Counted from the stretch's first letter, positions 1 through 58,106 are shown. The stretch: 64,000 nucleotides of DNA from Podarcis muralis (GCF_964188315.1 NC_135667.1:15562001-15626000); one strand, 5' to 3'. A program made the numbers and translations. Notes: generated by a model from the letters alone, not told the origin.

Positions 1-1210
1 CTCCCTGCACCGCTTCCTGCTCTGCGGATGCGGCCAGCACCTCCCGGTACTCGGGCTGATTCGCGGCCCCGTCGCCCAGATGCTCCCATAATCCTCTCTG
101 GGCTGCGAATGATCCTGGAGGGGATGCGCGCGATCCTCGGGTGGCCGCGCTTCCTCTGTGGGCTGCGAGCGATCCTCGGTAGGCTGCGCGTCCTCTCTGG
201 GCTGCGAGCGATCCTCGGGTGGATGAGTGTCCTCTCTGGGCTGCGAGCGATCCTCGGGTGGCTGCGCGTCCTCTCTGGGCTGCTAACGATCCTCGGAGGG
301 CTGCGCGTCCTCTGTGGGCTGCGCGCGGACCTCTGGGGGCTGCACATCCTCTCTGGGCTTCGCGCCCTCCAGACCCATCTTCGCGATTCTTAGCATCGGC
401 CGCCGGCAGGGCGAGATGAGATAAGCCGCTGGTTGAGGGTTGCGAGGAAGGCAACGGCCAGGGCGCAGGCCAGGGGGGCGCGCAATCGGCCTCCTGGCGG
501 AGCAGCTCCACTCCCAGCACCGCTTCCTGCTCTGCAGATGCGGCCAGCACCTCCCGGTACTCGGGCTGATTTGCGGCCCCGTCGCCCAGATGCTCCCATA
601 ATCCTCTCTGGGCTGCGAGCGATCCTCGGGTGGCTGCGCGTCCTCTCTGGGCTGCGAGTGATCCTCGGGTGGCTGCGCGTCCTCTGTGGGCTGCGAGCGA
701 TCCTCGGGTGGCTGCGCGTCCTCTCTGGGCTGCGCGTCCTCTCTGGGCTGCGAGCGATCCTCGGGTGGCTGCGCGTCCTCTCTGGGCTGCGAGCGATCCT
801 CGGTAGGCTGCGCGTCCTCTGTGGGCTGCGCGCGGACCTCTGGGGGCTGCACATCCTCTCTGGGCTTCGCGCCCTCCAGACCCATCTTCGCGATTCTTAG
901 CATCCGCCGCCGGCAGGGCGAGATGAGATAAGCCGCTGGTTGAGGGTTGCGAGGAAGGCAACGGCCAGGGCGCAGGCCAGGGGGGCGCGCAATCGGCCTC
1001 CTGGCGGAGCAGCTCCACTCCCAGCACCGCTTCCTGCTCTGCGGATGCGGACAGCACCTCCCGGTACTCGGGCTGATTCGCGGCCCCGTCGCCCAGATGC
1101 TCCCATAATCCTCTCTGGGCTGCGAGCGATCCTCGGGTGGCTGCGCGTCCTCTCTGGGCTGCGAGCGATCCTCTGTGGGCTGCGAGTCTTCTCTGGGCTG
1201 CGCGTCCTCT
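1..1210. repeat. Hierarchical tandem repeat: 507-510 bp units containing 18/21-bp GC-rich minisatellite subunits
   Basis: Unit landmarks at 28, 538, 1045 and at 394, 901; subunits gctgcgagcgatcctcgggtg and gctgcgcgtcctctctgg. Confidence 0.95.
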
Positions 1211-2097
1211 ACCGGCTGGCTGCGCCCGCGGCACCTTCTTCCCCTGGCCTTTGGAAGGCATCCTGAGCCCTGGAGGAGGAAGAACAAGAAGGGCGCTGGA
1301 GGCTGGCCAAGAGCGGAGCAGCTGTGCCGCGGAACCGACTGACCCAGGGCCCTCAGGGGAGCGGAGGAAGATCCGCCGACGGCTGCCCCGAACCGGGTGG
1401 CTCAGAGGAAGCTGCCGGCAACGCCCTTTTAAAAGCAGATGAAACGAAAGTTGGCCGCGCTCTTAATGGGCTTTGGGGGTGAAGGAGGGCTCTGCCGGGC
1501 TCAGGGGAGTCGAAAGGAAGCGGGCACCAGGCAGGAAGGGCCTCTACCTGCTGGCTGCGCTGGAGGGTCCTTTGCAGCGCCCATAAACCTTTTATTAAGA
1601 AATAATATTTTAAATATTGGATTGTCTGGGAAGGAATTCATTACAAGGTGAAGTGCCTGAGGAATTGAATGGGTGGAGGGTAGAGGGGTTGGAGGAGAGG
1701 CGGAAAGAGGCGCTAATTTCTCCGTGGGTAGGGGACGCAGTTTTGGACGCATCTACCAGGGGCGCGAGATCCCTTAGCTACGGCCCTGGCCGCTGCGCTC
1801 CCTCCCCAGCCGCTCCTTACTGTTACCGGTGGCGATCAGGAGCTCCTCGGCGCGGTCCTTGCAGTTGATGGCTTTCAGCACCTTGGCGGTCAGCTGCACG
1901 GCGTACTTCTCGGCGTAGAAGCTGACCAGCATGTTCGTCAGGTCCAGCGTCTCCGCCTTCTGCAACTTCCCTCGGGGGATGTTCGCGTTGCCCTTGCGCA
2001 CGGGGAACTCGTTCAGCTTGGCCTTGAACCTCCTCAACTCGCCCTCATTCAAGTTCTCCAGGCACGCCAGCAGGCAGTCTCGCGCGCTCCTCGCCAT
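1..2097 (-). CDS. PYD-containing gene P1 (5' part): PYD exon 2097-1821 spliced to a tandem-repeat exon 1425 to <1; continues beyond the window
   Basis: PYD exon has Kozak gcgccATGG, an in-frame TGA just upstream, and a phase-1 donor A|GTAAGG at 1820. Acceptor ttttaaaag|GG at 1426. The matching frame has no stop from 1425 to base 1 (checked manually). Confidence 0.7.
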
Positions 2098-3163: not shown

Positions 3164-3189
3164 TATTAATAAACGTATCTGCAAATTGC

Positions 3190-5632: not shown

Positions 5633-5890
5633 GTGGGTTAAACCACAGAGCCTAGGGCTTGCCGACCACAGAGTCTAGGGCCTGCCGATCAGAAGGCTGG
5701 CAGTTTGAATCCCCGCGATGGGGTGAGCTCCCGCTGCTTGGTCCCTGCTCCTGCCAACCTAGTGGCTCGAAAGTACGTCAAAGTGTAAGTAAATAAATAG
5801 GTACCGCTCTGTCAGGAAGGTAAACGGCGTTTCCATGCGCTGCTCTGGTTCGCCAAAAGTGGCTTAGTCATGCTGACCACATGACCCACA
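5633..5890 (+). mobile_element. Sauria-type SINE (partial)
   Basis: ctgtgggttaaaccacagagcctagggcttgccga...gtcatgctgaccacatgacc. Confidence 0.8.
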
Positions 5891-9330: not shown

Positions 9331-10149
9331 AGGAGGTGCTAAAGTCAGGGGTGAACGATGGCGTCATGACACCTTGGGTGGGGCATTGCTACACAGCGCG
9401 CATGTGCAGCATGCACTGTATATAGCGACGCCGCACATGCGCTATACATAGTTCGGACGGTGGTGGGATCCCTCCGTAGCCCCTACAGCCGCATGTAGAG
9501 GATCCCCTCCCTTTTTTTATTTAAGTACACATTTTGAATGTTGAATGTTTTGAGATTTTATTTGCTTATTGTGGATGTTGACATGTATGAGAAAGATTTT
9601 TGAGAATTTATGACAAACCAATAAAGATGAATTTTTTAAAAAATAAAAAAAATCCTAGAATCCTAGAACTGTAGAGTTGGAAGGGACCCTGAGCCCTTAT
9701 GTTGTTATTGCAATAATAATAAAACAATGATGACAACAATTGCGCAGTAGGCCAGTTTAGCCAGTAATTGCTTGGTGACAGGTTAATAAAATTACATAGG
9801 AAACTGTGTGACGTAGGCAATTTCCTGCCATTGTGTTGTGGTTTTCCTGGTTCAGTTACAAAATGAGATAGAGAGAGAAGCGAAAAGGGCAGTTATGCGG
9901 CAAGACGAGGCTTTCAGTGGAAGAGCCCACTCCCCAGTTTTGCTAAGTAAGTCGTCCCCCTTCCCCAAAATGAAGCAAAAGCGCTAATGAACCTCAACCA
10001 CCTTTACTCTACTGCCGCTTTAAACCACCGGAGTATCTCATTTCGCGGCAACTCGCCGAACTCGGGACGAGGCAAAAGTTTCGCTCCCCTCCAGACCCCC
10101 CCCCCTCACGATCCTTAGTATCCACCGCTGCCAGGGCCAAAGCTAAATG

Positions 10150-10400
10150 GCTACCCAGAAAGCACTCTGGGCTGTGAGCGGTCCTCCGGGGGCTACGCCT
10201 CCACTCTGGGCTGCGAGCGATCCTCCGGGGGCTGCGCCTCCACTTTGGGCTGCGCCCGATCCTCGGGGGGCTGCGCGTCCTTTCTGGGCTGCGCCCGATC
10301 CTCGGGGGGCTGCGCCTCCTCTCTGGGCAGCGCCCGATCCTCGGGGGGCTGCGCGTTCTCTCTGGGCTGTGCGTCCTCTCTGGGGTGCGCGTCCTGTCCC
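10150..10400. repeat. GC-rich minisatellite, a single shorter counterpart of the 1-1210 array
   Basis: ctgggctgcgcccgatcctcggggggctgcgc repeats. Confidence 0.85.
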
Positions 10401-10590
10401 GGCTGCCTGCGCCGACGGCACCTTCTTCCCCTGGCCCTTGCAAGGCATCCTGAGCCCTGGAGGAGGAAGGACAAGAAGGGAGCTGGAGCGGCTGTCCCGC
10501 GGAACCGACTGACCCAGGGCCCTCAGGGGAGCGGAGGAAGATCTGCCGACGGCTGCCCCGAACCGGGGGGGCATTGGCCACTCAGAGGAA

Positions 10591-11284
10591 TCAAGCGGGG
10601 CCGGGAAGCTGCCGGCAACTCCCTTTCAAAGGCCGAGGAAAATCTTCCTCTGCTAAATCAGGAAAGGAAACACCCGGGGGGTTGGGTATGCGGAGGGGAG
10701 CTCTCCTGGGCTCAGGGGAGTCGAAAAGGGGTGGACCCCAGGCAAGAAGGGGCTTTACCTGCTGGCTGCGCTGGAGGGTCCTTCGCAGCCCCCGGAAACC
10801 TTGTACTAAGGAATAATAAATTAAATATTGGATTGTCTGCGAAAGAATTCCTTGCAAGGTGAAATGCGTGAGGAATTGAATGGGTGGAAGGGGGAGGGTT
10901 GGAGGAGAGAGCTAATTTCTCCGTGGCCAGGGGGCGCAATCTGAACGCTTCTGCCAGGGGCGCAAGATCAGCCTGGCCGCTGCGCTCCCTCCCCAGCCGC
11001 TCCTTACTTTTCCCAGTGGCGGCCAGGAGCTCCTCGGCGCGGTCCTTGCAGTTGATGGCTTTCAGCACCTTGGCGGTCAGCTTCACGGCGTACTCCTCGG
11101 CGTAGAAGCTGATGAGCAGATCTTTGAGGTCCAGCGCATCCACCTTCTGCAGCCGCCCTCGTGGGATGTTGTCGTAGCCCTTGGAGATGGGGAACCTGTT
11201 CAGCTTGGCCTTGAACCTCCTCAGCTCGTCCTCGTTCAAGTTCTCCAGGCAGACCAGCAGGCGGTCCTCCGCGCTCCTCGCCAT
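10591..11284 (-). CDS. PYD gene P2, predicted PYD-only protein (~102 aa; exons 11284-11008 and 10622-10591)
   Basis: [46 protein letters not shown]...; phase-1 donor at 11007; exon 2 reads [10 protein letters not shown] then TGA. Confidence 0.7.
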
Positions 11285-13889: not shown

Positions 13890-14170
13890 TCAGCTCCATT
13901 CAAGGTCCGCAATAAGGAACCTGTTTTTGGCCTTCAATGCCTTGTAGAGCTGATCCTTGCAATAGTGGTTCCAGCCAGGCACCAGCGTGTAAAGTTCCCT
14001 CATTTTTTCTTGGTTAGTTTCCCTTGAAGAGATTTTTTGGTACTGTTCTTCATCCAGGATTTGGCCGTGCAGCATATCCAGGACTGCTGCAACGTTGGTG
14101 GTCCGCTGGATCAGCTGTTCCCGATACTGTTCAATGAAATGGCAGTCAGAGGAGCTGGATGGCGGAGCAT
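13890..14170 (-). CDS. Gene A terminal CARD exon (ASC/NLRP1-type)
   Basis: HFIEQYREQLIQRTTNVAAVLDMLHGQILDEEQYQKISSRETNQEKMRELY...LIADLEWS*. Confidence 0.93.
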
Positions 14171-25665: not shown

Positions 25666-25729
25666 CACACCCATTCAAAGTCAGCTCCAGCTGAGCCCTG
25701 TAGAAAAGCACAAAACAGGAGAGGCTGCA

Positions 25730-26337: not shown

Positions 26338-26385
<48 letters not shown>

Positions 26386-28432: not shown

Positions 28433-28725
28433 TCATTTCCCTTCCAGTTCATCAAAAAGATATGGATTTCTGTTCTTCAGTACTTTGTAAAGCAGATCCT
28501 TGCAATAGCGGTTCCAACTTGGCACCAGCATGTAGAGCGCCCTCATTTTCTCTTGGTTGGTTCCCTTCGAAGAGATAATTTCATACTGCTCATTATTCAG
28601 AATGGTGCCAAGGAGCATATCCAGCACCGCTTCAACGTTGCTGGTCCGCTGGATCAGCTCTTCCCGGTGTTGCTCAATGAAATGTTGTTTTGATGAGACT
28701 GACATTGGATAAGGTGGGCTTGCCT
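28433..28725 (-). CDS. Gene B terminal CARD exon
   Basis: HFIEQHREELIQRTSNVEAVLDMLLGTILNNEQYEII...CKDLLYKVLK...DELEGK*. Confidence 0.93.
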
Positions 28726-29979: not shown

Positions 29980-30010
<31 letters not shown>

Positions 30011-32169: not shown

Positions 32170-32211
<42 letters not shown>

Positions 32212-34291: not shown

Positions 34292-34337
<46 letters not shown>

Positions 34338-40459: not shown

Positions 40460-40740
40460 TCATTGCCCTTCCAGGTCTTTCACGAGATGTGGGTTTTGGG
40501 CCTTCAGTGCCTCATACAGCATATCCTTGCACCGGAGGTCCCAGCTTGGCAGAAGCCTGTAGAGCTCTCGCATCTTGTCTGGGTTAGTTTCCTTGGCAGT
40601 GATTTTTTGGTATTGCTCCTCACTGAGGACGGAGCCATGCAAACTATCCAGCACTGGTTCCACTGGGATGGTCCGTTGGATTAACTCCTTCCTGTGCCGC
40701 TCAATGAAGTGCACTTTGGAAGAGTTTGGAAACTGCGGCC
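40460..40740 (-). CDS. Gene C terminal CARD exon
   Basis: HFIERHRKELIQRTIPVEPVLDSLHGSVLSEEQYQKITAKETNPDKMRELY...KDLEGQ*. Confidence 0.93.
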
Positions 40741-43069: not shown

Positions 43070-43124
<55 letters not shown>

Positions 43125-46100
43125 ATCTATCTATCTATCTATCTATATCTATCAGTAGCTGAATTGGGTTCCACACAGTCACAAAAACAAATTAACCGGA
43201 AAAGCCTCAAAAACCAAAATGCAAAATAAATAGCAGAAACAAAAGTGCCAAACTTAATCCATTCCGAAAGTCTGTTTAACTTCCAAAATGTTTGAAAACC
43301 TAGGCGCAGCTTCTGATTGGTGCAGGCGCCCCAGAAACAATAGCCGACAGCCGCATCAGATGTTCGGTTTCCGAAAATTGTTCGAAAACCAGAACATTTA
43401 CTTCCGGGTTTTTGGCATTTGAGAACCTAGGCATTTGAGAACCAAGGTACCACTGTACAAAAGTTATTTTTCATTTTTGTGCAGTGTATGTTCTACTGTA
43501 TCACCAGCACTTCCTATTGGGAGGAAGATAAGATACAAGTACAATGAAAGAAACAACTAAAACCTGCTGACCTTGTGCTGGGTGTATAATAGGAGAAGCC
43601 ATCTGCCCTGAAGTTAACTCATCTGAAAATCAAGAAGAAAAAGTCAGTCAAAGAGGGAATGTGACCTGTGGTCCTTTTCCATCCTGCCTCCCAAGATATG
43701 ACTCAACCTCACGATCATCCCTTGTTCAAAACTCACTTTTTTTTAAATGGGCCTTCCAAACAACTTCAGTCGTGCCCTTCTTCATCAGGTAGAAGTTGAA
43801 CTTCTCTTGCATTTGTTCAGCAGACAGTTCTACATACTGCTGCAGTTTCTCTGCATCCAGGTATTGAAAATGCAGTTCCTGTGGGAAAGAATGAAACCTC
43901 TGTAGGTGTGAATCTGGTTTGGCCCAACCCACCATTCCAAGGGAGTCAGATTAAAGGGTGAAGAAGGATCCTCGTTGAATTTCTCCCATTCTCAGACTTC
44001 ACAGTCTTGGTTCTGCCCCATCAAAAAACCACCATCATCTTCATGTCTCACCTCAGGATTCACTGTGACATCCTCTGGAGTACTAAGAGAGACCTGAGAG
44101 CCAATCATCAGAGGTTTCAGGGTCACAGGGGGTTTCTCTATTCTCTTTGAATTTACTTCACGCTTATCGACCGCCTGGGAAGGGTAAAGAAAGTCACTTT
44201 TGACATACGCAGAGAGGGAACAAAATTTTTGGAAGACTAGATGCCTACAACATTCTTGGCATTGTAGCACCAGGTAATGCAGGAATGGGGAACCTGGTGT
44301 CCTCCAGATGTTGTTGGACTCATATCCTTCCCAACAAGCATGGGCCAAGGATGATGGGTTTCATAGTTCAAGAACATCTGCAGAGACACAGATTCTCCAT
44401 ATGCAATATAAAGAAAATTAAACCACTATGACAATAGAAACTAAAATGTGGAGTGGAGATTTCCTGGCCTCATGAGGAACTGAAGGAAGCCAAGGCTCTT
44501 GGACTGGGCAGCCTGGACTATAAAGTGGCCAAGAGGTACCATGAATCCTGGGTCCACCTGCATCTTCTCTTGATGAGACCATGCAGGAAACCACAGAAGC
44601 CATGAAACTTCATTATTTGAATGAAGCATAAGAAGACATTTTAAGGAAAAGTTTAAATTGAGAAGGCAATATGATAGTGTGCTTTATCTCCCATGTGCCA
44701 ACACTGCAAATCAGGAAGAATGTTTTTCCTCAGGAGTTATCTGAGAAAGCTCGTTACTACCAAGCTGATTCCTTAATGAACGAAGCAGTATTTGTTCATT
44801 GCTAAATACGTTTACTCTGAAGGAAGTGTTACTGATTTCAATGAAGGCTTCCAGGAGAATGTGCTTAGGATTTCACAAGTAAGTGACGACCCGTTTGTTT
44901 AGAGAACCAGACAGGCTGTGTAACAAATGAAAAGGGCATATTTCAATATTGGAAGAATCACTTTAAACCAACAGTGCCGGTGGGAAGCTAAGTAACCCAG
45001 CATTGGGCAACTTGTTAATCTTCTCTCTACTGGCATGTTGATGTTGGGTAGAAGAGATCAAGTCCAACAATTGTGCATAGTCGGGGTTAATATGATCAAG
45101 CAAATGATCCAGACAATCGGGAATACCAGAGATGGAGGTTCCTGGTTACCTTTATTATTGAAGGGTCATTGGGCAGAACGTACAGGTGAAATGTTGGCGT
45201 TTCCAGCTGAAGCCTATGATAGAGCAGTACGACAGTGTTGATCTTTTGCTTAAACCACTTTTTGAAAACGACTCCTAGGGAAGAGAACTTGGGGTTTTCC
45301 AACACAGCATGGTGAGGCTCCACTCTGTCTGGCTTCTCCAGCCTCATCTCCCCTTCAACAAAATGTGCAATGTAGACATGGGAACTGTCATCACCTGAAA
45401 AGACAAGCATGTTAGAAGTGGGAAAGTGACAAAAATATCATCACTTAACCCTCCCTATTTCATGCAAGTATTCATTTTCTCATTGTACTGTAATTTAAGA
45501 GGTTTATAACATCATTTCACAGGACAATATGCTTGCATGGCAGCTTAAAACAGAATGCAAATCACAGAAAATAATAAAACAGCACAGTTGGAACATTTTG
45601 AAAAATTGAAACAAATAACAAAAGTCTGGTATGCCAGCACTCCTGACCTCTAGAACCCACCCATAGCATTCTGGAAACATCAATGGACATTTAGGACTCC
45701 TCCTATTATGGTTATAATGCTGGAAACTTCTCCCCTGACATACCTTCAAGGCACAAGAAGTGAGGGATGCAAATGGATGCCACAGCCTCTGCTGCATCCA
45801 CCTTAAAGTTGAGCAGAGGGCCAGCGACATGCAACTCCTCAGTGTTCTGTTCTGCCAGGAGCTTCGGCCATGAATCAAAGTAGTATGTTAAGGTCACAGC
45901 TTCTTTCACTTCACATATGAGACCAGTATCATCGCACTGGAAGGAGCCAGCCTCAGTCGAGCGCACTCTGAATGGCACAAAGAGAAAGACGAAAAGGAAA
46001 AGGGGACCCCACTCGGTGTACCTTGGGATCTCAAATTTCAGCAGCTCCCTGAGCAATGCCAAAATTCAGCACCTTACCCATGCCTCTCGCACTCCATTCT

Positions 46101-49100
46101 GAATAATAGTTGTGGCATCTCCTGCAGAGACCCTCAGGCTCCACAGCTGAACTGGCCGTGCTCCCCTAAATTTGCCTTTGAATAGCTGACATTAGGGTTG
46201 TTGAACCAAACTGTGGGAATGTTGAGGGTGGCAAGAGAGGGTATATTGATTATTAATATCCTAACTTGCCCTAGCAAGTTTCTTTATTTAGCAAAGTGCA
46301 TTCTCCTTCTTACACAGCAGAAACTGGCTGCAGACTCGTGTGAGTCTCTTAAGACTATAGGCAATTCAATCTGGCTTGTCCAGATTGAGATGTATTCTAT
46401 TATTCCTGGTAAGACCCCTTTAGGTAAAGGTAAAGGACCCCTGACAGTTAAGTCCAGTCAAAGACGACTCTGGGGTTGCGGTGTTCATCTTGCTTTACTG
46501 GCCGAGAGAGCCGGCATTTGTCCGCAGACAGTTTTTCTGGGTCATGTGGCCAGCATGACTAAACCGCTTTTGGCAAAACCAGAGCGGCGCACGGAAATGC
46601 CATTTACTTTCCCACCAGAGCGGTACCTATTTATCCACTTGCACTTTGACCTGCTAGGTTGGCTGATTAAAGACCCCTTTAATCCCTCCTAAAAGAATAA
46701 AGACACTGCAGTCTTATTCATAAGTGCTAAAAAGTCGTTTACTTACATTCAAAGAGAACACGGTGTGAATCCTGAAGGCAGGCTTAAGGCTTAAAGTTAC
46801 AAGTATGTACAATGTGCATTTACCCCATATTGGGGAATAACCCAGTGCTGGCTGAGAGCCAGCAGTGCAGTCCAAGCTGGAAGCAGGTCAAAGGTGAAAG
46901 GTGAAAGAGAGAGGACGGGTGCATGACTTGGCCTCTTATCAGGTCTGGTAAGGTCACAACCACCTGCTAGTCACATGCAAGAGGAAGGATGCTCCAGCCA
47001 AGTGGACCCAACATTCCCCTGCATGTCCACTCTAGCAAAACAGGCAATGTTGTACTTGACTGCTCTGGTGGATTACATCCCACAAAAACTAGTAGAGAAG
47101 AACAAGATAAATTGATTTTGGGGCAATGGCAATAATGCCAAGGAAGGGACAGGGGACAAGAGGAGCTGAAATGACTCCCTTGCTTCAAGAAACTCATTGG
47201 GTTATCTTGGGCCAGTCACTGCCTCTTAGCCTAAAGTACGGTACCTCACAGAGTTGTGAGGGGAAAATGGAGAGGGGAAAACCATGCATGCCAACTTGAA
47301 CTCCTTGGGAGAAAGGTGGAATATTTTTAAGGAAGAGAAACAACAATTCCTCCAAAAATCCAAACTCCATATTTTTCACCTTTCTCAAACTCTGCATCCT
47401 TCTTTTGATGCTACCCCAACCTGAAAAGGGGGCGGGATATATACAACTGGAAGTTAGCAACAGCAGTGCTTCAATGTAATGTTTTTTTCCAGCTCTGCTC
47501 CATGGAACCAAGGAATTCCTCAGTGAAGACATCAGGAATGGTGGTTAAGCTTCCTTCAGAGAGAATTTGTCCACCACAACTGACCGTTCACTGCAATATG
47601 CAGATCACAGATGTACTCTGCGTAAGTTTTACCGAGAACCACCATATGTGGTGACTGTGAGACCCACAGAAACCAGATGTGCTCTGTTGGACAATTCAAA
47701 GTAGAAACCACTCCCTGAGGGGAGAATGTTTCAAAAGGTCTGAGAGAGATAGAGATGATAGAGATAGAGACAGAGATAGAGATAGAGAGATAGCGAGAGA
47801 GAGAGAGATCACACACCTGTAAGCTTCATGGCCCCTTTCTGAGTCCCAAACCACCTCTGGTTTTATTTTTTCTGGAATATCCTATAATGAAACCATAATC
47901 ATTCATGTAGATGCCAGAATCCATATCCCATCTGGAAACGGGGCATTATTGTCTGTTCCTAAGACCCTTGAGACCACACCCTTCTAAAACAGATGTGACA
48001 CAGGAAGATTCCACACTAAACCGGAATCACAGCATTAGAGTTCTGCAGTAGTGCAATGATCTTTTTAGATGGAAAGTGTTTAAGCACTGGAAAATATGGG
48101 ACGATTTGAAATGTGACATCAACTGGACCGCCCGTAAGGTAAGAGCGAGGCAAGATGATTCCCGACTAAATGGAAACACAGTGTGCTAAGTGTGCATTGC
48201 AATGACTCTCACCATGAGTTATTAGCACAAGGAAAAAGCTGTTTAGATGCAGCCTTATTTCCTGCTACCAGACTCTAGCTTTGAATAACAAATATGTAAA
48301 TAATTACCTAAGATGGGATAGTTGCTAACCTTAGGGGACTAGAAATTTAAATTCAGTGGCTTCACGTTAAAAATATCAACGTGTACCCTATTCCTGTGGG
48401 TGGGAAATGCACATCAAGACAGGTCAGTCCCTTACCTCACTGGGACACCGGCCACACGGCACACTTTCCCCAGAACCTGCTGAGTTCTCCATCTTCATGC
48501 TTCCTTCCCTCTGTAAATATGAGCAAAGCAAGATGATTCCCAACTAAATGTAAGCACAGCAAGGCAAGAAGATTCCACATGAAATTGGAATCACATAATT
48601 ACAATTGCGCAGAAATGCAATGCTTTGTTTTTTATTATTTTTTTAAGCACTAGGAGCAACCTGTTTGGAAACAGCCTTGTGGCTCAATACCAGCAATTAG
48701 TGCCGACTAGCAAGATGATTAATTAATGTACAAAAATACCTAAAGAGGGACAAGGGCTTTTTACAGTGCACAAGAAATTCAAATTCAGAACCTTTCTGTT
48801 AGAAGTACCAATATAGGCTTCATTATCATGGGTGGTCAATGCAAATGAGAAGAATGCCCACCCTTTACCTCACTGAGACACCAGTTGCTTGTGATAATCT
48901 CCCCAGAACCTACTGGGTTCTCCATCTTCATGCTTCTTTGTTCCCCTTCATATAAGGGGGATTCTGAGTGTGGTGCTGTAAAAGAATGACAATTATTTGC
49001 CTGCTATGACTTTTGGAAGTTGGTTTGCAGGGTGAACACATAAAAATACAGTATTTCTTAAGAACCCATAGGATGTGAAGAGTAGCGCCTTGTGTGAGGC

Positions 49101-52100
49101 CAAAATTCCCTCACCTCTCTCTTTCCATACTACTCAATTCACTATGTTATAGTTGCAAAGCCCTGCAGTACCCTCTAGGAACCAGTCTCACTGCCCAAAA
49201 TTCGCCTCTAGTGTGGATTGTGGCTAATGCCATGTTTCTGTCTCAGGGTTGGCCCAATACATTTTTCTACCTGAGGCAAACCAGAAAATACCCCCTATGC
49301 AACCTGATTAAGACACTGAACAGAAACCAGGTGATCACTACTACCCACTATGATCTTAGACACATCCTCTTAATCCTTAAAAAAAAAAAAAGATTTCTTC
49401 AGTGTTGTTGAGAGCACATTGAGCAGCAGGTTGGCCTTGGTGACTTCCAAAGTCTGTTCCAACCCCAAAATGCTGTTATTCCATTCAGAGCAAAAGCTCA
49501 GCCTTGGTCAACCTCGTGGTAGGGCCATCTCATCTCTCCTACTGACCTTGTTCTGGATGTGGGCCTGAAAACTTCAGCTCCTCTGAAAGAGACCAGGAAA
49601 GAGGCAGTCAGAGAGGGCATGTAGATGGGATGTCCTTTCCATCCTGCCTCCTGAGCTATGGCCCAACCTTGTGGTCCTCCCTCAGCCAAAGCTCACCTTG
49701 CCTCACATGGGCCTCCCAGACCAGTTCATTCGTGCTCCTCTCTATCAGGTTGAAGTTGAGCTTGTCTTGCGTGAATTCAGCACTGATTTCGAGGAACTGC
49801 TCCTCCATGTATTGAAGCTCCAGTTCCTGTGAAAAAGCTCTGTAGGTGTGAATGTGACTTACCGGTAACTGATGGACATTTTATCTCCAAATGCTGAGAA
49901 GAAGCTGAACTGAACTAGCAGACTTTACTCTGGGCATAATCACACTCAGACTCTGGGTTTAGGAGATGCAAACAGCCATGGTTGTTTTTGCATCTCAGCA
50001 GGAGAGACACCAAAAATGTCTCCTTTACCAAGATGAGGATGAAGAAAAAGGAAGTAGTAAATGACATATCAGTGTAGCACCTGAGAGGACGTCAGCACAG
50101 GTTAGGTCAGACAGGACAATCTAGGAAACCAGGAAGTCTCTGTCCTCCTCTGTCTCCCTTTCCCCATGCAGACATATCTGCCTCAAGTGCAAGCTGATGC
50201 ATCACACCACTTCCGATGTAATTCCCCCACCTCCCCACCATTCAAAAGGGGGTAAACAAAAGACTGAAGGGATCCTGGTTTGCTTCCTCCCATTGTTAAA
50301 AACCTCACAGCCTTGGTTCCCTCCAGGCAACCCCTGTAATCATCTCTGGTCTCCTACCTCAGGGCAGACTGTGACGCCATCTAAATTTTGGATGAAGACG
50401 CGAGAGCCAATCTTCAGAGGCTTGAGTGCTCCAGAGGGTTTTGGCAGTCTCCTTGAAGGCCACATTTCCTCAAATTTATAGACATTCTGGGAACGGCAAA
50501 CATGGTCACTTTGGAGACATGAAAGGAAGACACCAAATCTATGGAACACTGGGTCCCTTTGCTTACTCCTGGATCTCGGATAGAGAGAGATCCAAAAGAG
50601 ATGTCTCCTCTCCCAAGGATGGCATGGAGAAGAAGGAAGTAGAGGTCAGCAACCCAAAGAATTTCACTCTAGCCTGAAGGAAGGTCAGCAAAGGTTAAAG
50701 GACAGTCTAGGAAAACTTAGAGAGTCCTCTCTCTAACTACTTTCACCCATGCAGCTACATCAGCCTTCAGCACATACTGAGCTGCATCCCAGCACTTCCA
50801 ACAGAACAGGCATTCAATAGTATCATTGTTTTCATAATCAAAATCTGACTAATAATCTAGCCTGCCCGGAACACAAATCAGAGTTGGAGATTCTTAGTTA
50901 CCTTTCTTAGGGAAGAGTCATTGGGTAGGAGGTACAGGTGGAATTTTGGGACACCAGAGATTTCCAGCTCCTGATAGAGCAGTGCCATGGCGTGGACCAT
51001 TATCTTTCGCTTAAACAATGCCTTTTTGAAGATGACCCCACAGGTATAGAAGCGGGGGGCTTTCAATACAGCATGATACGGCTGCACGCGATCTGGCTTC
51101 TTCAGTCTCATCTTCCCTTCAACAAAATGTGCTATGTAGACATGGGAACTGTCTTTCCCTGAAAAGAAACACAAGGGAAACATGGGCAAACAGTTCACTA
51201 TACTGCAGACTTGAGTTTGGGTGAGAAAACTCACCCCTTCTCCCTTCCTGTTTAATGCAAGTCAAGCCACTGGCCTGATCCAGCAGACCCATTCTATGTT
51301 CTTAAGTGTTTATTTTGTTATCATAATCTAGAGGTGTTTTTAAAAGCCTGCATTACAGAGCAATGTCCTCCCAAAGCAAGTTACAGGACAAAATACAGTA
51401 TACAGTAAGTACAAAGTATAGTAAGTCAAAGAAAAAAGCAGAATTCTAGCAAAAAGACAGAATTCTTGCAAAATCAAAAGAAGCCACAAAAGGCAGATAA
51501 AGCATTGTGATCCACTGAACCAGCCCATAGCATTATTCAGCCAATAAGGAATGTACATGATAGACAAAAGGAAGAATCTTAAACAGGAATGGATATTACC
51601 ACTCTATTCTTGGAAGCTTTTCTTCCTACCATACCTGTGAGACACAAGAAGTGAGGGAAGTGAACTTCTGCCACAGCTTCTTCTGCATCCGCTTGGATGT
51701 TGAGCAAAGGACCAGCAACAGCCAGCTCTATCATTTGCCATTCGTGCAGGTGTTGAGTCCATGAATCAAAGTGGTATGTTATGGTCACAGCTCCCCTTAC
51801 CTTAAATATAAGATCAGTACAACAGCAAAGGAAGGAGCCAGCTTCAGTGAAGCAAAATCTGAAGGCGAGAAAGACAAAAGGTGTCGAAAGAGATTGATGC
51901 ATCTTCCTCTACTGTTACGGCTGATACTCTTATAAGCAATTTGTGGGTCGTGTCAAATGTGCTCTCTTGATAACAATGATCATTAGCAGTATTTCAGTCC
52001 AGCATTGACTGGAATTTTGGTACTTAACTTTTGGCTCTTCATCTGATACTGTGCTGTGGCATGGGCGAGGGGCAGGATTTATGTTAGGGGGTACATGCTT

Positions 52101-53856
52101 TATGTCCACTACTCATCTTCCACAGCGATGTGCACCCACAGGGGCAAGCAGAGTATGCCTAGAGAGCATCACAATGTGGGAGCATCACCATATCCATATG
52201 CAATGCAGAAAACATTCTCTGATGGAAGTACTACTCGCCTGTAAGTTTCATGGCTCCTTTGTGAATCCCAAACTTTCTCTGGTCTTATCTTTCCTGGAAG
52301 CTCCTATAACAAAGAATAAAGGGTCCGAATTGATACCATATTCCTCCTCCTATCTGAAAATAAGAACACCCACTATGACCACATCAAGGATCCCTTCTTG
52401 AGCTCCACTCCACAGCTCCACATTGCTAAAAGCTCTTTATACCTGCTGCATTCTGTATTCATTTTTAGTATAGTAATTAGACCTGTGCTGAATTCTGAAA
52501 TACTGTGTGAACTGCTGATCCATTAAAAAAAACAACTTTAAAAGAAGATATAATCTTCCAAAATATCTCATTATGGTGATTATAGCATGGCTGCAACCCA
52601 AACATCCATTAACATTTCATCCCCAAGTACTGATGAGGGGGAAGAAGGGTACACTGTGGGTTGGCACTTGGTGTCCATCCATACCAGATTCTCCCACTCT
52701 CCTTTCACCCAGAGAATTATTTCTGGAGACAACTGTGGACATGGCAATATTGGAAAGTACTGTACCACAATGCATGCAAATGAAGAAACATTTAAGCAGG
52801 AGGATTGAAATGTAACAAACAGCTGGACCCCCCACAAAATATGAGTGAGATTCCACACTAAACTAGAAACACAATGTGATAAGTGCCCTTTGTCCACTTG
52901 CCATGGTTTATTAGCACATGGAGCCCCCTGTTTTGATGCAGCCAGTACAACCCTTACCTCGCTGGGACACTGGATGCACATGACGCTTTCTCCAGGATCT
53001 TCAGAATGCTCCATTTTCTGGTTCCTCGTTTCCTTTCTGAATAGGAGGGATTCAGACTGCAGCACTGACTGGTCAGAAACCTGGACTTTATTTTTAAACC
53101 AATATGACTGTTGTGAAAATGAAGAAAGGTGCAAAAAATGACCTTGAGGAATAAGAATGACGTGAAGTCAAATCCACCCAGTACTGCAAATAGCAGGATC
53201 CGAACAGAAGCCGGACGTACCATTTCTAAACATTCCAGGAACCGACAACAAGCTTGTTCTCCCCTTTCCAGGATTATACTTAGCAATTTTTTGATTTTCT
53301 CTTTAGAATCTTTCTCCATTTTGAAAACATTCTTGTATTCTTGTAGTGTGATGACAGAGCAAGAGTGTAGGGTGTGCAAAACGAAGTCTAGGTCCTCTTC
53401 AAGAATTTCAATCAACTGTTCTCTTCCCTTGCAGATCATCTCATCACTAAAGAATGCGTATCTTTTCAACGACCTGTGGCAGAAACAGAAGCAGGGGAAG
53501 AACTGGAACCTGGTTAGGTGGCCAACTTGCAGCCAGTGGACCATCGGTAGCTCTCAGCTGCACACCCTGGGGCCCACCAAGACTTGGGGAACCTTGCCTT
53601 CTTTTCTTAGCCTTAAGCTGTGCAATTTCACCATCAATTTCACCTGGTGTGCCAGCAGGTGAAGAGGGAGCTAAAAGCGTACGTGTGAAATGAGCGGAGG
53701 GGAAAGTGGTGTGTGCAAGAGAGAGTGGGAATGAGAATTGTGAAGGTGGGTGTGTCTGTGCACATATCTGAGCAAGTGTGCAGCCCCCAACACACTACTC
53801 ACCTGCACACACAACCCTCAGGGATAAAAAGATTGCCCTGCTGTCCCCTATTCTAG

Positions 53857-53915
<59 letters not shown>

Positions 53916-56900
53916 ATTTATACCCTGTCCATCTGGCTGGGTTTCCCCAGCCACTCTGGGCAGCTCCCAAGAGAATATTAAAAACATGATAAAACATCAA
54001 ACATTAAAAACTTCCCTAAACAGGGCTGCCTTCAGATGTCTTCTAAAAGTCAGATAGTTGTTTATTTCCTTCCTTGACATCTGATGGGAATCTATTAAAA
54101 AGACTCCCTCGAATATCCTCCCAGCAACCCCAGTCAGTTCTTATCTTTAGTCCTTATCTTAGCATTATTATCTTTATATGGGCAGGATGGGGGAGGCTGA
54201 GAAACAGTCCACACAGTGGTTTCGTTGTAGAGGCAAGATCTGACTCGGACTTCCCTCTTTCACAGCTCACTATATTCCAGCGGCTCTGCACCTTTATGGT
54301 TGTGGAGTGAGGCTGGCTTGAAAAGTATCTGGCAGCCTGACAGCTTCAGCAGAAAATATGCACTTTGGTTTTACTGCCCAACGGTTGACTTAGAAAGTCA
54401 TCTGTGGGCAGGAAAGGGAAAGGTTCAACATGGTGATTTGAAAAATATTCTTTCTTCCAAGCAGCCTTTTCCTTTAAAAAGCACACACGAAATTAGTAAA
54501 TTGGCGCTAAAGCATTTATTTGTTTTAAGCAGAAGAGCTTGCTAAATTACTTATAATGTTTACAGTGGTACCTCGGGTTAAGTACTTAATTCGTTCCGGA
54601 GGTCCGTTCTTAACCTGAAACTGTTCTTAACCTGAAGGACCACTTGAGCTAATGGGGCCTCCTGCTGCCGCCGTGCAATTTCTGTTCTCATCCTGAAGCA
54701 AAGTTCTTAATCCGAGGTACTATTTCTGGGTTAGCAGAGTCTGTAACCTGAAGCGTATGTAACCTGAAGTGTATATAACCTTGAGGTACCACTGTGTGTG
54801 TGTGTGTATATATTTCAGATATATACGTTTCACTGATTTTACAATCATTTTGACATTTAAAAAATTTACTTCCTTCCCCTTCTTCATGCAGTTCCTTAAA
54901 TTTATTTTTAATATTTTCTGCATATCCAGATTAACTTAACTTACTCATTTATTTATCTTCTTTATATATATACTCTTATGTAGCTGCAGGTTGTTACAAT
55001 AATCCTGCCAGTGTTTTTATCTGTTTACAATTTATCTGTAAATATTCAATGAACCATTTCCATTCTTTTATATAAAAAAGTTTGTTATCTTGGTTTCTTA
55101 CTCTTCCGGTAAGTTTCTCCATTTCTGCATATTCCATAAGTCTTTGTATCCATTCTTCCTTTGCTTGGACTTCTTCTTCTTTCCATTTTTGGGCAAGTAA
55201 CATTCTTGTCATATAATGTTTAAAATTGAAGTGTTTTGCATTGAGAGTGTAGTTTGCTGTAGTGTTAACTGAGAGGGGAAAACACATTGCTAAAATGGTG
55301 GCTTCAGTCACTTAAGTAAAGTGTAGAAATTACCCTTTAGTGGCTCTTTCTGATGAAAGCAGTTCCTCCAGACCTTGAATAATTTTTGAAGACAATACTA
55401 CAGCTGTCCGATGCCTTGAAACATGCTTTTCAGGGGGTTGCTCTGCTGTTAGATATATTGAGAAAGTGAGTACACATAAACAGTTTTAGTTAATCAAACC
55501 CATGGCCTAGCTGAAGTTCTGCCAGAACCTTCAGGGCCAGGAGGCATATGTAAGCAGAGGGGAAGGGATAATATTGTTCTGAAGTGATGGCATTGATTTT
55601 ATAAAATCATTGTGAAACTTGAAGAGATACTGATTTCAGAGTCTTCCCTCCGATTTTGTCCAGAATACATATTCAGAATGCTGCACAGATTTGAGACACA
55701 CCCAAAGCCCTTCCAAGAAGCTTCCTTTACACCCAGCCCCACTCCTAGAAGAAGACCATCAGACTCAGCCAATGTTCTCCCTTCCAAGTTCCTTACCTTT
55801 CCCGATGAGACGAAAGAGCCATTCTGGCAAGGGCTCACATTCAATGGCCTTCAGCACCTCTGACACCACCTCCACAGAATAATCCTCAGCACAGTATGTA
55901 AGCAGCAATTCTGTGAGCTCCCAAAGATTTGCTTCCTCCAGCAACCCCTTGGGGATACTGACATAGCCTTCCTTGAAGGGGAACACGCTGAGTTTATCCT
56001 TGAACTTCTTCAGATCTGACTCCTTCAAGGTTTTCAGGGTGACCAGCAGGCATAGATGTGTAATCCTTACTGTTGGAATTATTGGTGTTAGTAGCAGTAT
56101 TGAACAGAAAAAACCCAGCCTACATTCCCCTTCCCCTTCTCTTCCTGTTGGAAAACCTTGAATAGGTAGCACTAAGTGGGAAAGGGCCGTGGATCAGTGG
56201 TAGATCACATGCATACAAAGGATCCCAGGTTGAATCCCTGGAATCTCCAGATAGGGCTGGGAAATATTCCTGCCTAAAACCTTGGAATGAGCTGGACCAA
56301 CTGGTCCAATGTGCCCTAAGGCAGCTTTCCATCTTTCTATGATTTCCAATGATTCCAGCAATTCAGCCTGACTCAGAAGACAGAAAAAACTCCAAGGGGG
56401 TTAGGAAGGCCTGAAGACTCTCTTAATTTACACGCCTCTTCTTAGCTATTTGCAGGCTTCAAACATGAAGGAAAGAAGACTGCATTCCACAAGGAAAAAT
56501 CTGAACCCCAAGTCCAAAGGACCACAAGAAATTCATGTAAACTGTTTCTTTGCTGTTCTCTGCATCCTAAGATGAAGATACCGTATTTGCAATTTATTAA
56601 GCATTGGCAAGGGACACAGGTGGCGCTGTGGGTTAAACCACAGAGCCCAGGACTTGCCGATCAGAAGGTCAGTCGTTCGAATCCTCACGACGGGGTGAGC
56701 TCCCATTGCACAGTCCCAGCTCCTGCCAACCTAGCCGTTCAAAAGCACGTCAAAGTGCAAGTAGATAAATAGGTACCGCTCTGGCGGGAAGGTAAATGGC
56801 GTTTCCGTACACTGCTCTGGTTTGTGAGAAGCGGCTTAGTCATGCTGGCCACATGATCCGGAAGCTGTACCCCGGCTCCCTCGGCCAATAAAGCGAGATG

Positions 56901-58106
56901 AGCGCCGCAACCCCAGAATCGGCCACAACTGGACCTAATGGTCAGGGGTCCCTTTACCTTTACCTTTAAGCATTGGCAATCCGATTGTTGAAAGCTGCTG
57001 AGAATTGCTGCCATCAGCCAAAAGCTTTCTATAGAAAACAGTGCATGTACTAAAAATATCTCAGCTTGATATTTTTTGTTATTTATTGCTGCACTTTGGG
57101 GCTAGGCTAATCTAGGAGCAGGGAGTCTCAAGCCCTGTGGCCAAATGGGCTCCTCTAGACCCCTCCTTCAAGCCCTTGGAATGCTCCCCAGGCCACACCC
57201 CTCACTGACCCCGCCTGGAAACCCTCCTGGGGTGTCTCTGCCTTCCTGAAATGGGGCCTTGAGCTCCGATCAGGGCTGGCGCACTCATGAGGCAAGGTGA
57301 GGCATGATCCACAGGGGCAGCAGATCCCAATGCAGATCGTTATTCCCCACCTTGTTCCTGATGTTCCTTCTTCCCTGGTGGGGAGCCATTTTTCTTCTTT
57401 CGCCTCAGGCGCTAAACTCTCTTGGGGCAGCCCTAGCTCCGATAATGCTTCTTTCTAGTCTAGATGGAGGGCAGAGGGATGTGTGAAAACACTAGCCCAC
57501 TTTACACAGGTAACAGTGACACCCATCATTCTGCTCCCTTTCACTGCTGGTCTTGCCTTTGCTGGAAAAGTTGCCCCACCCCTGGGCGACTACAGCCATG
57601 GGAAGGAGCTGTGCTGTCAGTACAAACAGAACCCCGAGGTGTCACCACCACCAGCCAGATGGATCCACCCCTCTCCGGAGATCCTTACTTAGCCTGATGA
57701 AAACAAAGAGAGAGCCCACCGGGGGCTTGTAGTCCATCGCCTGCAGCACCAGCGCCGTCACCTCCACGGCATAAGCCTCGCCATAGTACTGGATTAATAG
57801 ATCCCTGAGCTGCCGAGCATCGGCTTCCCTCAGCAACCTTTTGGGGATTCTTCCGACGCCCTCCTTGACCGGGAATCTGAGCAGTTCGCCCTTGAATTTC
57901 CTCCAGTCCTCGTCCCGCAAGTCCAGCAAGGTGCCCAGAAGGAGGAGAGGGGCGCAGTGAATCGCCCAAGGCTGCGGCTCCAGAAAGAGCGAGGGACCCG
58001 CTTTGGGCAGCCGCGTCGCGGGGAAAAGGCTGCCCTCGTCGTCCCCCTTTCTTGGGGGAGCTGTGAAGGAGAGGGCCGGGAGATTGAGGACGATCTTCTT
58101 CGACAT
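40460..58106 (-). CDS. Gene C: PYD - PYD - CARD - CxxC - FIIND1 (F-Y) - CxxC - FIIND2 (F-S) - CARD protein, up to ~1096 aa
   Basis: Exons 58106-57689, 56069-55797, [53670-53598 tentative], 53473-53221, 53107-52958, 52303-52239, 51858-51635, 51158-50902, 50486-50358, 49826-49697, 49582-49547, 48945-48869, 48510-48436, 47881-47817, 45967-45744, 45394-45150, 44174-44052, 43878-43737, 43622-43572, 40740-40460. The chain 53473-40460 is phase-consistent; the PYD2-to-CARD link is uncertain. Confidence 0.7.
42586..42925 (-). mobile_element. Sauria-type SINE with (GTAAG)n tail (42537-42590), nested in a Tigger-like element
   Basis: Reverse complement of the SINE consensus seen elsewhere in the window. 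Confidence 0.85.
43060..43150. repeat. (TATC)n microsatellite
   Basis: Directly visible. Confidence 0.95.
43737..44174 (-). CDS. Gene C FIIND2 UPA exons (44174-44052, 43878-43737)
   Basis: AVDKREV...KPLMIGSQ; ELHFQY...EVVWKAHLKK. Confidence 0.86.
45150..45394 (-). CDS. Gene C FIIND2 exon with canonical site (ENPKF-SSLG)
   Basis: IAHF...LEKPDRVEPHHAVLENPKFSSLGV...FHLYVLPND. Confidence 0.92.
45744..45967 (-). CDS. Gene C FIIND2 ZU5 exon
   Basis: EAGSFQC...VAGPLLNFK...IPHFLCL. Confidence 0.92.
46212..47084 (-). mobile_element. Solo LTR (inverted) with nested Sauria SINE fragment (46421-46665)
   Basis: tgtgggaatg...acatcccaca; near-TSD caaac/aaaac. Confidence 0.7.
48436..48945 (-). CDS. Gene C duplicated inter-FIIND linker exons (48945-48869, 48510-48436)
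   Basis: GEQRSMKMENPVGSGEIITSNWCLSE and REGSMKMENSAGSGESVPCGRCPSE; phases 1-0 and 0-0. Confidence 0.7.
49697..50486 (-). CDS. Gene C FIIND1 UPA exons (50486-50358, 49826-49697)
   Basis: NVYKFEE...KPLKIGSR; ELELQYMEEQF...ELVWEAHVRQ. Confidence 0.86.
50902..51158 (-). CDS. Gene C FIIND1 exon with non-canonical site (APRF-YTCG)
   Basis: IAHF...LKKPDRV...HAVLKAPRFYTCGV...FHLYLLPNDSS. Confidence 0.92.
51635..51858 (-). CDS. Gene C FIIND1 ZU5 exon
   Basis: EAGSFLC...VAGPLLNIQA...FPHFLCL. Confidence 0.92.
53221..53473 (-). CDS. Gene C internal CARD exon (different type from the terminal CARD)
   Basis: EMICKGREQLIEILEEDLDFVLHTLHSCSVITLQEYKNV...KIKKLLSIILERGEQACCRFLECL fits the CARD pattern. Confidence 0.85.
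53857..53915. repeat. (CAA)n microsatellite
   Basis: Directly visible; tail of a LINE-like fragment. Confidence 0.95.
54800..55230 (-). mobile_element. L1 3' fragment
   Basis: MLLAQKWK...EEWIQRLMEYAEMEKLTGRVR. Confidence 0.7.
55797..56069 (-). CDS. Gene C second PYD exon (phase 1-1)
   Basis: LLVTLKTLKESDLKKFKDKLSVFPFKEGYVSIPKG...; TACTAAC branch point, ccaacag acceptor, G|GTAAGG donor; 273 nt. Confidence 0.85.
56610..56968 (+). mobile_element. Sauria-type SINE
   Basis: Full-length; flanked by repeated ttaagcattggcaa. Confidence 0.88.
57689..58106 (-). CDS. Gene C exon 1: short extension plus first PYD
   Basis: LLLGTLLDLRDEDWRKFKGELLRFPVKEGVGRIPKRLL...YAVEVTALVL; phase-1 donor A|GTAAGG. 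Confidence 0.82.

Follow-up and report, generated by a model that had tools for sequence, protein, structure and literature searches.

A NACHT-less family of FIIND genes with PYD and CARD modules, adjacent to ASC in Podarcis muralis

We studied a stretch of 64,000 nucleotides of the lizard Podarcis muralis (OZ076966.1:15,562,001-15,626,000), hereafter the window, which carries a cluster of genes combining PYD and CARD death folds with the FIIND, the ZU5-UPA module of NLRP1 and CARD8. The window was placed through the locus L006, which equals window positions 21284-143 at 100% identity. It is vertebrate DNA with short exon-like open reading frames (ORFs) and several CpG-island-like stretches. 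Modules were sought by self-tblastn, tblastx and blastn searches and with Pfam, and the weak copies with a hidden Markov model (HMM) built from five PYDs (Table 1). The minus strand of the window holds four FIINDs and three terminal CARDs, two internal CARDs of which one is intact and the other gutted, five intact PYDs and one PYD with an in-frame deletion. Pfam finds PYRIN in five exons (E 1e-10 to 1e-23), CARD in the terminal exons at 13.9, 28.4 and 40.5 kb (E 3e-15 to 9e-21) and in an internal exon at 53.2-53.5 kb (E 2e-11), and FIIND with UPA-FIIND in four units, whose ZU5 exons score E 1e-22 to 8e-27. The self-comparisons give one exon plan for all four FIIND units, with four ZU5 and four ZU5/UPA-junction exons. 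These FIINDs share 55-64% identity and, judged by sequence, are old paralogues. They are distributed over three genes: gene A (unit G1), gene B (unit G2) and gene C, which joins units G4 (FIIND1) and G3 (FIIND2).

No NACHT domain accompanies these FIINDs. At 379 aa, the largest ORF of the window is too short to be an intact NACHT exon. Probed by tblastn with four NACHT-LRR-FIIND and two URGCP-FIIND proteins, the window yielded no exon for a NACHT, an LRR or a URGCP-GTPase (best E at or above 0.1), while the FIINDs of the same six probes, our positive control, matched all four units. With positive controls, NACHT and LRR were equally absent from about 220 kb of neighbouring and orthologous loci, including 98 kb more of P. 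muralis and 99 kb of P. raffonei. Hidden NACHT, LRR or GTPase exons were therefore rejected, none of the six probes having revealed one in the window or in the extended loci. A preliminary description, made from the sequence of the window alone, had proposed a PYD/CARD-FIIND-CARD family with modular N-termini and no NACHT or LRR exon. Both parts hold, the former through Pfam and the exact threading of RefSeq proteins, the latter also for exons concealed in introns. Its list of modules stands as well, except that only three of its four decayed PYDs were recovered, and weakly.

Table 1. Positions of genes, exons and fragments in the window.
Feature	Position	Strand	Evidence and remarks
Gene C	40463..58106	-	RefSeq LOC114582834 isoform X2 (P0182), 1119 aa, 20 coding exons; exact threading
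Gene C exon 1, start codon and PYD_e	57690..58106 (PYD ~57678-57944)	-	PYRIN E 2e-14; phase-1 donor, A then GTAAGG
Gene C PYD_d, tandem partner, symmetric phase 1-1 exon without ATG	55798..56067 (Pfam-matched exon stretch 55798-56079)	-	PYRIN E 1e-14; acceptor and donor found
Gene C exon x (38 aa; enters in phase 1, leaves in phase 2), separating PYD_d from internal CARD	55333..55446	-	Via P. raffonei model P0016; threaded in P0182
Gene C internal CARD exon	53221..53472	-	Pfam CARD E 2e-11
Gene C FIIND1, five exons, catalytic His kept, Tyr for P1' Ser (RF/YT)	49698..52303	-	Pfam FIIND E 1e-25, UPA-FIIND
Gene C FIIND1-FIIND2 connecting exons	48436..49583 (49548-49583, 48869-48976, 48436-48510)	-	Threaded in P0182
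Gene C FIIND2, five exons, intact IAHF...KF/SS	43738..47881	-	Pfam
Gene C terminal CARD exon, ASC-type	40463..40738	-	Pfam CARD E 9e-21
Gene B (G2)	28436..36142	-	P0193, RefSeq 'CARD8-like isoform X2', 771 aa, 8 exons; exact threading
G2 PYD_c	35054-35335	-	Pfam PYRIN
G2 linker	33907-34026	-	
G2 FIIND, IGHF...KF/SS	29231-32860	-	Pfam
G2 CARD	28436-28726	-	Pfam
Gene A (G1)	13890..20572	-	Assembled here by homology and phase: 598 aa, 10 exons, one ORF, nine GT-AG introns
G1 in-frame-deleted PYD exon	20281-20572	-	
In-frame-deleted PYD	20240-20386	-	tblastn 1e-8; blastn 79% to PYD_c; overlaps G1 exon 1
G1 in-frame-shortened (gutted) internal CARD	19527-19756	-	
G1 FIIND, KL/SP	14988-18144	-	Preceded by linker, followed by mini exon
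G1 terminal CARD	13890-14170	-	Pfam
PYD_b gene	10143..11284	-	RefSeq LOC144325254 (P0214, 100% identical), 196 aa
PYD_b PYD exon, ASC-like	11008-11284 (Pfam-matched exon stretch 11003-11284)	-	
PYD_b tail exon, 104 aa, Ala/Gly/Arg-rich, coded by 39-bp minisatellite	10143-10456	-	Tandem Repeats Finder (TRF) period 39
PYD_a unit	1..2097	-	PYD exon 1821-2097 (Pfam-matched 1816-2097, E 1e-23); repeat exon from 1269 past window edge
PYD fragment, decayed	23006-23071	-	HMM E 0.017; blastn 77% to PYD_b
Possible PYD fragment, weak	9135-9338	-	HMM E 0.008; blastn 70% over 75 nt
PYD fragment, weak	25571-25765		HMM E 0.13

Gene C carries two FIINDs in tandem. Its layout is PYD-PYD-exon x-CARD-linker-FIIND1(RF/YT)-connectors-linker-FIIND2(KF/SS)-mini exon-CARD, where the slash marks the cleavage position. 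All 20 exons are open in the orthologous DNA of P. raffonei, for which we used the loci L001, L004 and L007, colinear with the window at 95-97% identity. CpG islands lie at the 5' ends at 58-59, 36-37 and 20-21 kb and there is none at 48.5 kb, which fits with G4 and G3 forming one transcription unit. Two other ways of reading the FIIND tandem were considered. Joined directly, FIIND1 exon 7 (phase 1) and the G3 linker (phase-0 acceptor) yield a stop; two small connector exons, as in the RefSeq model, are needed to link them. Obligatory skipping of FIIND1 would be in frame, from the internal CARD to the G3 linker, but FIIND1 and the connectors are constrained, which speaks against it. The first two connecting exons show no change in 144 nt relative to P. 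raffonei while introns differ by about 4%; linker4, mini4 and the connectors together show none in 294 nt, against the same intron background (p 8e-6). In a tree of CARDs the internal CARD of gene C falls in a distinct and old clade of internal CARDs (support 100/98).

Genes G2 and G1 are simpler. Upstream of PYD_c, whose ORF shares 94% identity with a protein of P. raffonei, the G2 model starts with about 270 aa of low complexity; these first codons evolve neutrally and may be non-coding. Just upstream of the G2 linker exon, at 34050-34135, the 3' end of an internal CARD exon survives as a remnant (71% to the internal CARD of gene C), which suggests PYD-CARD-linker-FIIND-CARD as the ancestral unit and the loss of the internal CARD from G2. 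For G1 we found no database model. Its FIIND-CARD part is complete, while both N-terminal death folds have been shortened in frame. The P. raffonei orthologue of G1 keeps all splice sites and the KL/SP motif and has no stops, the 5' part of exon 1 being outside L007. Another called gene overlaps G1, PYD_b, PYD_a and the minisatellites: it covers L006 713-21142 and L005 1-1784 (window ~20571 to ~1 kb past the left edge), and its 1667-aa product has no Pfam hit on record. It could be a genuine protein, very long and repetitive, or else phase-1 exons that the predictor strung together.

The FIINDs of the window differ at the residues that matter for autoprocessing. A His lies 27 residues upstream of the cleavage site in all four. 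The site itself is KF/SS in G2 and in FIIND2 of gene C, KL/SP in G1 and RF/YT in FIIND1 of gene C, where the nucleophile is missing; hence G2 and FIIND2 carry the autoprocessing signature, i.e. a His some 27 residues upstream followed by Phe/Ser. Our exhaustive HMMER search with a FIIND query returned 610 cluster representatives. We surveyed 159 FIIND stretches, from the best 150 of the 610 plus the four units of the window, and found F/S in 144, L/S in six and F/Y in two. The latter are FIIND1 of gene C and P0019 of Lacerta agilis, and the Tyr variant is conserved in three lacertids (P. muralis, P. raffonei and L. agilis). In CARD8 the P1' Ser is essential, S297A abolishing cleavage and F296H nearly so (D'Osualdo et al., PMC3210808). 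A cleavage-dead FIIND had been put forward as a candidate inhibitor. One FIIND indeed lacks the nucleophilic Ser, but it is no separate inhibitor gene: it is the conserved first member of the tandem in gene C.

Sequence searches against the PDB place the modules with different relatives. The FIIND-CARD of G2 is best matched by NLRP1 (rat 7crw, E 8e-66; human 6x6c, E 1e-64), and the FIIND match to NLRP1 and CARD8 spans about 350 residues. The terminal CARDs match the CARD of ASC at E ~1e-22, that of NLRP1 at ~1e-19 and that of CARD8 at ~1e-4 only. Among solved structures, the PYD of ASC is the nearest to the PYDs of the cluster.

All 38 coding exons of gene C, G2 and G1 are open in P. muralis, as are the orthologues recovered from P. 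raffonei (37 complete exons and the 3' end of G1 exon 1). We estimated the ratio of nonsynonymous to synonymous change (dN/dS) between the two species by the method of Nei and Gojobori, with a binomial p for the excess of synonymous change. In gene C it is 0.15 for PYD_e and PYD_d (p 0.002), 0.16 for exon x and the internal CARD (p 0.014), 0.16 for FIIND1 (p 4e-4), which retains its Tyr, and 0.24 for FIIND2 (p 0.007). At this level of comparison the non-cleavable FIIND1 and the connectors are clearly constrained, though counts are small. The terminal CARD is the fastest-evolving module of the gene (0.84, 13.5 nonsynonymous and 4.5 synonymous changes; Fisher test against the rest of the gene, p 0.013). 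In G2 the values are 0.96 for the N-terminus, 0.36 for the FIIND and 0.26 for the CARD, and undefined for the PYD (6 nonsynonymous and 0 synonymous changes). In G1 they are 1.15 for the N-terminus, 0.58 for the FIIND (not significant) and 0.31 for the CARD (p 0.03). By these ratios G1 is the least constrained of the three genes, and only the PYD and N-terminus of G2 look relaxed or positively selected. The preliminary description had assumed a conserved FIIND-CARD effector behind variable N-termini. This stands for the FIIND core, at 0.16-0.36 in three of the four units, and fails at the C-terminus, which in relatives may be CARD, PYD or PYD-CARD and which in gene C is the part that evolves fastest.

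The organisation of the cluster is best understood from its neighbour. The ASC gene of P. muralis (PYCARD, P0217) lies on the same strand, 9.2-12.5 kb beyond window position 1. On sequence grounds, adjacency to ASC and the sharing of exons with it is the main organising fact, and it had been missed before. The gene consists of a PYD exon and a CARD exon with a phase-1 junction and the donor GTAAGGAG, as in the PYD exons of the cluster. The latter begin and/or end in phase 1, with donors in which A/G precedes GTAAGG. Phase 1 also opens the terminal CARD and bounds the mini exons on both sides (1-1); the FIIND block of G2 has it at either end, from the linker to FIIND exon 7. The internal CARD exon runs from phase 2 to 0, and in CARD-bearing units the FIIND block is entered through a phase-0 junction from CARD to linker. 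With such phases, each of these modules can be added or lost while the frame is kept. ASC being a PYD and a CARD exon joined in phase 1, G2 is effectively an ASC-type PYD, a FIIND block and an ASC-type CARD.

Sequence similarity to ASC is unevenly spread. The PYD of ASC shares 83% identity with PYD_a and 81% with PYD_b, and 40-46% with PYD_c, PYD_d and PYD_e. For the CARD of ASC the figures are 81% with the terminal CARD of gene C (88.5% in DNA over 598 bp including non-coding flanks), 58-59% with the CARDs of G1 and G2 and 27% with the internal CARD. In the CARD tree the terminal CARD of gene C, the ASC CARDs of lacertids and other lacertid G3-type CARDs form a 99/99 clade that leaves the cordylid ASC outside, which indicates exon exchange with ASC inside Lacertidae. 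We thus showed, at the level of sequence, that the frame survived the duplication, loss and gutting of PYD and CARD exons as well as their exchange with ASC.

PYD_a and PYD_b are the close duplicates of the ASC PYD. The PYD-only gene predicted by the preliminary description exists as RefSeq LOC144325254: its product P0214 has, according to Pfam, a PYD and no CARD, NACHT or FIIND, and carries a repeat tail. PYD_b starts with a Kozak sequence (GCCATGG) in a CpG island, and its best acceptor was predicted independently; the orthologues in two other Podarcis species have 244 and 251 aa, compared with 196 aa here. The PYD_a unit is 86% identical to it in nucleotides, with a frame open up to the window edge. 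The tails of both are coded by GC-rich minisatellites with a 39-bp (13-codon) period (121-1210 and 10163-10406), which are open in all three frames. A partial CARD-like remnant (L005 5377-5466, 63% to a CARD probe) lies downstream of PYD_a, between the left edge of the window and ASC; this suggests that PYD_a began as a full duplicate of ASC whose CARD then decayed. We considered and rejected that PYD_a and PYD_b are C-terminal PYD exons of FIIND genes, as in P0005 and P0006, given an in-frame stop three codons upstream, the Kozak ATG and the CpG island. Nor is PYD_a the ASC gene, which is a separate gene 9-12 kb further on.

The cluster extends beyond the window. In P. muralis the array extends over at least 190 kb, with no fewer than eight FIIND units, counting those of the locus L002, which lies 35 kb past the right edge, and none of them has a NACHT. 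L002 and the P. lilfordi locus L003 are further paralogous arrays; at 80-91% identity we rejected them as orthologues. Parts of the cluster that lie far apart show no colinearity of their arrays. By domain typing and source names, NACHT-less FIIND proteins with arrays of death folds occur among squamates in lacertids, Rhineura, skinks, Hemicordylus, Anolis, Pogona, Varanus and Eublepharis, other squamates having one to four PYDs upstream of the FIIND. The same kind is found in turtles (up to 8 CARDs before the FIIND), alligator (PYD-FIIND-CARD), ostrich and teleosts (up to 11 PYDs); the family is hence not confined to lizards, which corrects the earlier idea of a lineage-specific one. Geckos also have NACHT-LRR-FIIND proteins. 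Isoforms of a single P. raffonei gene end in CARD (P0016), PYD (P0165) or PYD-CARD (P0181). Many squamate and turtle paralogues have a PYD instead of a CARD at the C-terminus, i.e. a UPA-PYD effector (P0005, P0006, P0012, P0035, P0165; loci L002 and L003). A URGCP-like GTPase is fused to FIIND as PYD-CARD-URGCP-FIIND-CARD in P0010 of Lerista edwardsae and as FIIND-PYD-URGCP in P0015; these fusions may be another sensor domain coupled to FIIND, or mis-fused gene models.

Mammals have no FIIND proteins other than NLRP1 and CARD8 (PMC11760013). Our FIIND tree joins these two in one clade (100/99) and places the four FIINDs of the window in a squamate clade (87/61) to which the gecko NACHT forms also belong; within it G2 pairs with Rhineura (99/97) and G3 lies in a lacertid expansion. 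Since the two clades are separate, the CARD8-like layout of these genes is convergent and not orthologous to CARD8. The likeness is nevertheless close. As in human CARD8, there is no NACHT or LRR, a ZU5-UPA FIIND precedes a C-terminal CARD, and the His...F/S signature is present in G2 and FIIND2 of gene C; G1 even approaches the layout of an unstructured N-terminus followed by FIIND-CARD, through the in-frame loss of both folds. Unlike CARD8, the lizard genes have folded N-termini (PYD in G2, PYD-PYD-CARD in gene C), exist in several copies, one of them with two FIINDs, and have terminal CARDs that are of ASC/NLRP1 type by sequence. With human and rodent NLRP1 they share the FIIND-CARD module, which gives the best sequence match, a PYD N-terminal to the FIIND and, by analogy, an expected activation by functional degradation; they lack its NACHT and LRR, a short linker exon joining PYD to FIIND instead.

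With ASC itself the cluster shares PYD and CARD modules of its type, phase-1 junctions, physical adjacency and, for gene C, a CARD that falls within the lacertid ASC group. It differs from ASC in the block of 5-7 FIIND exons between PYD and CARD (two blocks in gene C) and in the low identity (40-46%) of the FIIND-linked PYDs. PYD_a and PYD_b recall human POP1 (PYDC1), which arose by duplication, lies about 14 kb from ASC and is 64% identical to it (PMC3775265). The lizard copies also duplicate the ASC PYD exon, 11-20 kb from ASC and at 81-83% identity. They differ from POP1 in their independent, convergent origin and in an Ala/Gly/Arg-rich tail of about 100 aa or longer, coded by a minisatellite, with a repeat number that varies by species. 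Finally, the fusion of a sensor to a domain resembling host immune proteins is also found in integrated-decoy receptors, such as RRS1-WRKY in plants and NLRP1B in mouse (PMC13037943), a likeness that is architectural only.

The reading we favour, with a probability of about 0.6, is that the window is part of an ASC-linked tandem array of NACHT-less FIIND genes with interchangeable exons and a mechanism like that of NLRP1 and CARD8. We showed the gene anatomy, the exon phases and the linkage to ASC from the DNA; the mechanism is argued by analogy. G2 and FIIND2 of gene C would autocleave at KF/S, as NLRP1 and CARD8 do. The N-terminal fragment, made of the low-complexity part, the PYD/CARD folds and ZU5, would keep UPA-CARD inactive until its degradation or cleavage, driven by a pathogen, set UPA-CARD free. 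Once freed, the ASC-type CARD would form polymers and draw in caspase-1, either directly or together with ASC. Uncleaved full-length FIIND proteins (FL) form autoinhibitory FL-DPP9-CT complexes with C-terminal fragments (CT), whose activity is suppressed by cleavage-resistant mutants (PMC11760013). The non-cleavable FIIND1 of gene C is probably a built-in full-length FIIND restraining freed C-terminal fragments; because it resembles the full-length partner of such complexes, it may act as a built-in checkpoint. The PYD-plus-repeat genes are probably POP1-like duplicates of the ASC PYD that modulate ASC assembly.

Several observations weigh against this reading. The ratios above come from 6-37 substitutions per module. 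In G1 the P1 residue is Leu, as in UNC5b, which does not cleave (PMC3210808), and its FIIND is not significantly constrained. The PYD-PYD-CARD N-terminus of gene C is under purifying selection, which is not the pattern of a host-pathogen arms race, and PYD_c, PYD_d and PYD_e, at 40-46% identity, are poor mimics of the ASC PYD. RefSeq models are automated and inconsistent across species: in P. raffonei they break up both G2 and G1, giving PYD, FIIND and CARD as genes of their own, and LOC128399336 (L004 10001-88671) spans 78.7 kb, fusing the CARD exon of gene C's orthologue with a paralogous unit that lies upstream. The case of L004 indicates that gene models in the array are unreliable without long-read RNA.

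How the N-terminal folds would work admits several answers. As a special case of the favoured reading, they might be integrated decoys, i.e. ASC-like PYD and CARD baits that imitate the death folds of ASC or caspases; pathogen factors that bind, cleave or ubiquitinate such folds would then destroy the N-terminus and so trigger FIIND-CARD. This is possible and no better than tentative: viruses do target the ASC PYD, e.g. with the poxvirus vPOP M013 (PMC3775265), NLRP1B provides a demonstrated case of an integrated decoy (PMC13037943), the ASC PYD comes nearest to these PYDs among solved structures, the cluster is linked to ASC and has exchanged exons with it, and the PYD of G2 shows six nonsynonymous changes for no synonymous one; yet the PYDs and internal CARD of gene C are conserved (dN/dS 0.15-0.16), the FIIND-linked PYDs are only 40-46% identical to ASC, and G1 has an open ORF without either N-terminal fold. 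One might also speculate, with similar caution, that these genes are a latent ASC, in which a FIIND block inserted between the PYD and CARD exons of ASC gave squamates, and probably other non-mammalian vertebrates, a branch of sensing independent of NACHT. The ASC-like N-terminus would then guard the adaptor's own death folds, an attack on it would release a UPA-CARD, UPA-PYD or UPA-PYD-CARD seed, the conserved non-cleavable FIIND would be a checkpoint in cis, and exon exchange would keep the effector end matched to ASC. Rather unlikely, in our view, is that the genes are regulators in place of sensors, ASC paralogues that tune the assembly of ASC and caspase-1 by co-polymerising through PYD and CARD to cap or seed filaments, with FIIND cleavage parting the two halves. 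The composition of G2, an ASC-type PYD, FIIND and ASC-type CARD adjoining ASC, the near paralogues ending in PYD or PYD-CARD (P0165, P0181, P0005, P0006), the resemblance of the PYD-plus-repeat genes to POP1 and the purifying selection on the N-terminal folds of gene C would suit such a role. Yet the conserved His...F/S and UPA-CARD arrangement is that of known functional-degradation sensors, and an adaptor role leaves the tandem FIIND unexplained.

Two further explanations have much less in their favour. Most units might be pseudogenes or prediction chimeras in an array of fast turnover, leaving only a simple FIIND-CARD gene functional. Decayed PYD and CARD fragments, the relaxed FIIND of G1 with L/S at its cleavage site, the inconsistent RefSeq models and the lack of colinearity between distant parts of the arrays are what debris would leave. 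We nevertheless hold this very unlikely, given that all 38 coding exons are open in P. muralis and the recovered ones in P. raffonei too, that FIIND1, FIIND2 and the N-terminus of gene C are under significant purifying selection (p 4e-4 to 0.014) with invariant connectors, that the Tyr variant is kept in Lacerta agilis, and that the FIINDs are old paralogues, G2 pairing with Rhineura at 99/97. The other explanation, that these are ordinary NLRP1 genes whose NACHT and LRR exons lie outside the window or are spliced from afar, is largely refuted. Gecko NACHT-LRR-FIIND proteins do fall in the same squamate FIIND clade, and the FIIND-CARD is nearest to NLRP1 among solved structures; but neither the window nor the additional 98 kb of P. 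muralis and 99 kb of P. raffonei contain NACHT or LRR, G2 and gene C each begin with a start codon of their own and a 5' end in a CpG island, and the exon phases close the ORFs without an extra exon.

The locus also shows that a CARD8-like architecture arose independently of mammalian CARD8. Because this layout has a separate origin in lizards, a distinct family is hidden behind reptile labels such as 'CARD8-like' and 'NLRP1b-like' and in the presence/absence tables based on them (e.g. PMC11258412). Literature searches on PYD-FIIND-CARD, on FIIND in reptiles or zebrafish and on CARD8 with integrated decoy brought up no paper that describes such architectures. The preliminary description saw here an undescribed system, which is right in that no paper on it was found, and wrong to the extent that automated RefSeq models exist for two of the FIIND genes. 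An ASC-linked, NACHT-less FIIND inflammasome family with a tandem-FIIND gene is absent from the searchable literature and present as unnamed RefSeq models. The locus offers a set of natural experiments: FIIND sensors with ASC-like PYDs and CARDs, a FIIND without nucleophile beside a competent one, effectors that switch between CARD and PYD, and linkage to ASC with signs of exon exchange. Integrated decoys in vertebrates are a live question (PMC13037943).

The remaining features of the window are repeats. A fragment of a retroelement of long terminal repeat type lies at 60534-63478, and its minus strand carries, at 61198-61584, the ORF of an integrase core (rve, E 9e-10); it is flanked by two direct repeats with identical 107-aa ORFs (60534-60857 and 63155-63478). 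An interspersed repeat of about 350 bp has copies, 75-90% identical, at 42588-42932, 56604-56956, 5663-5917 and 23611-23958, in both orientations and in introns as well as between genes.

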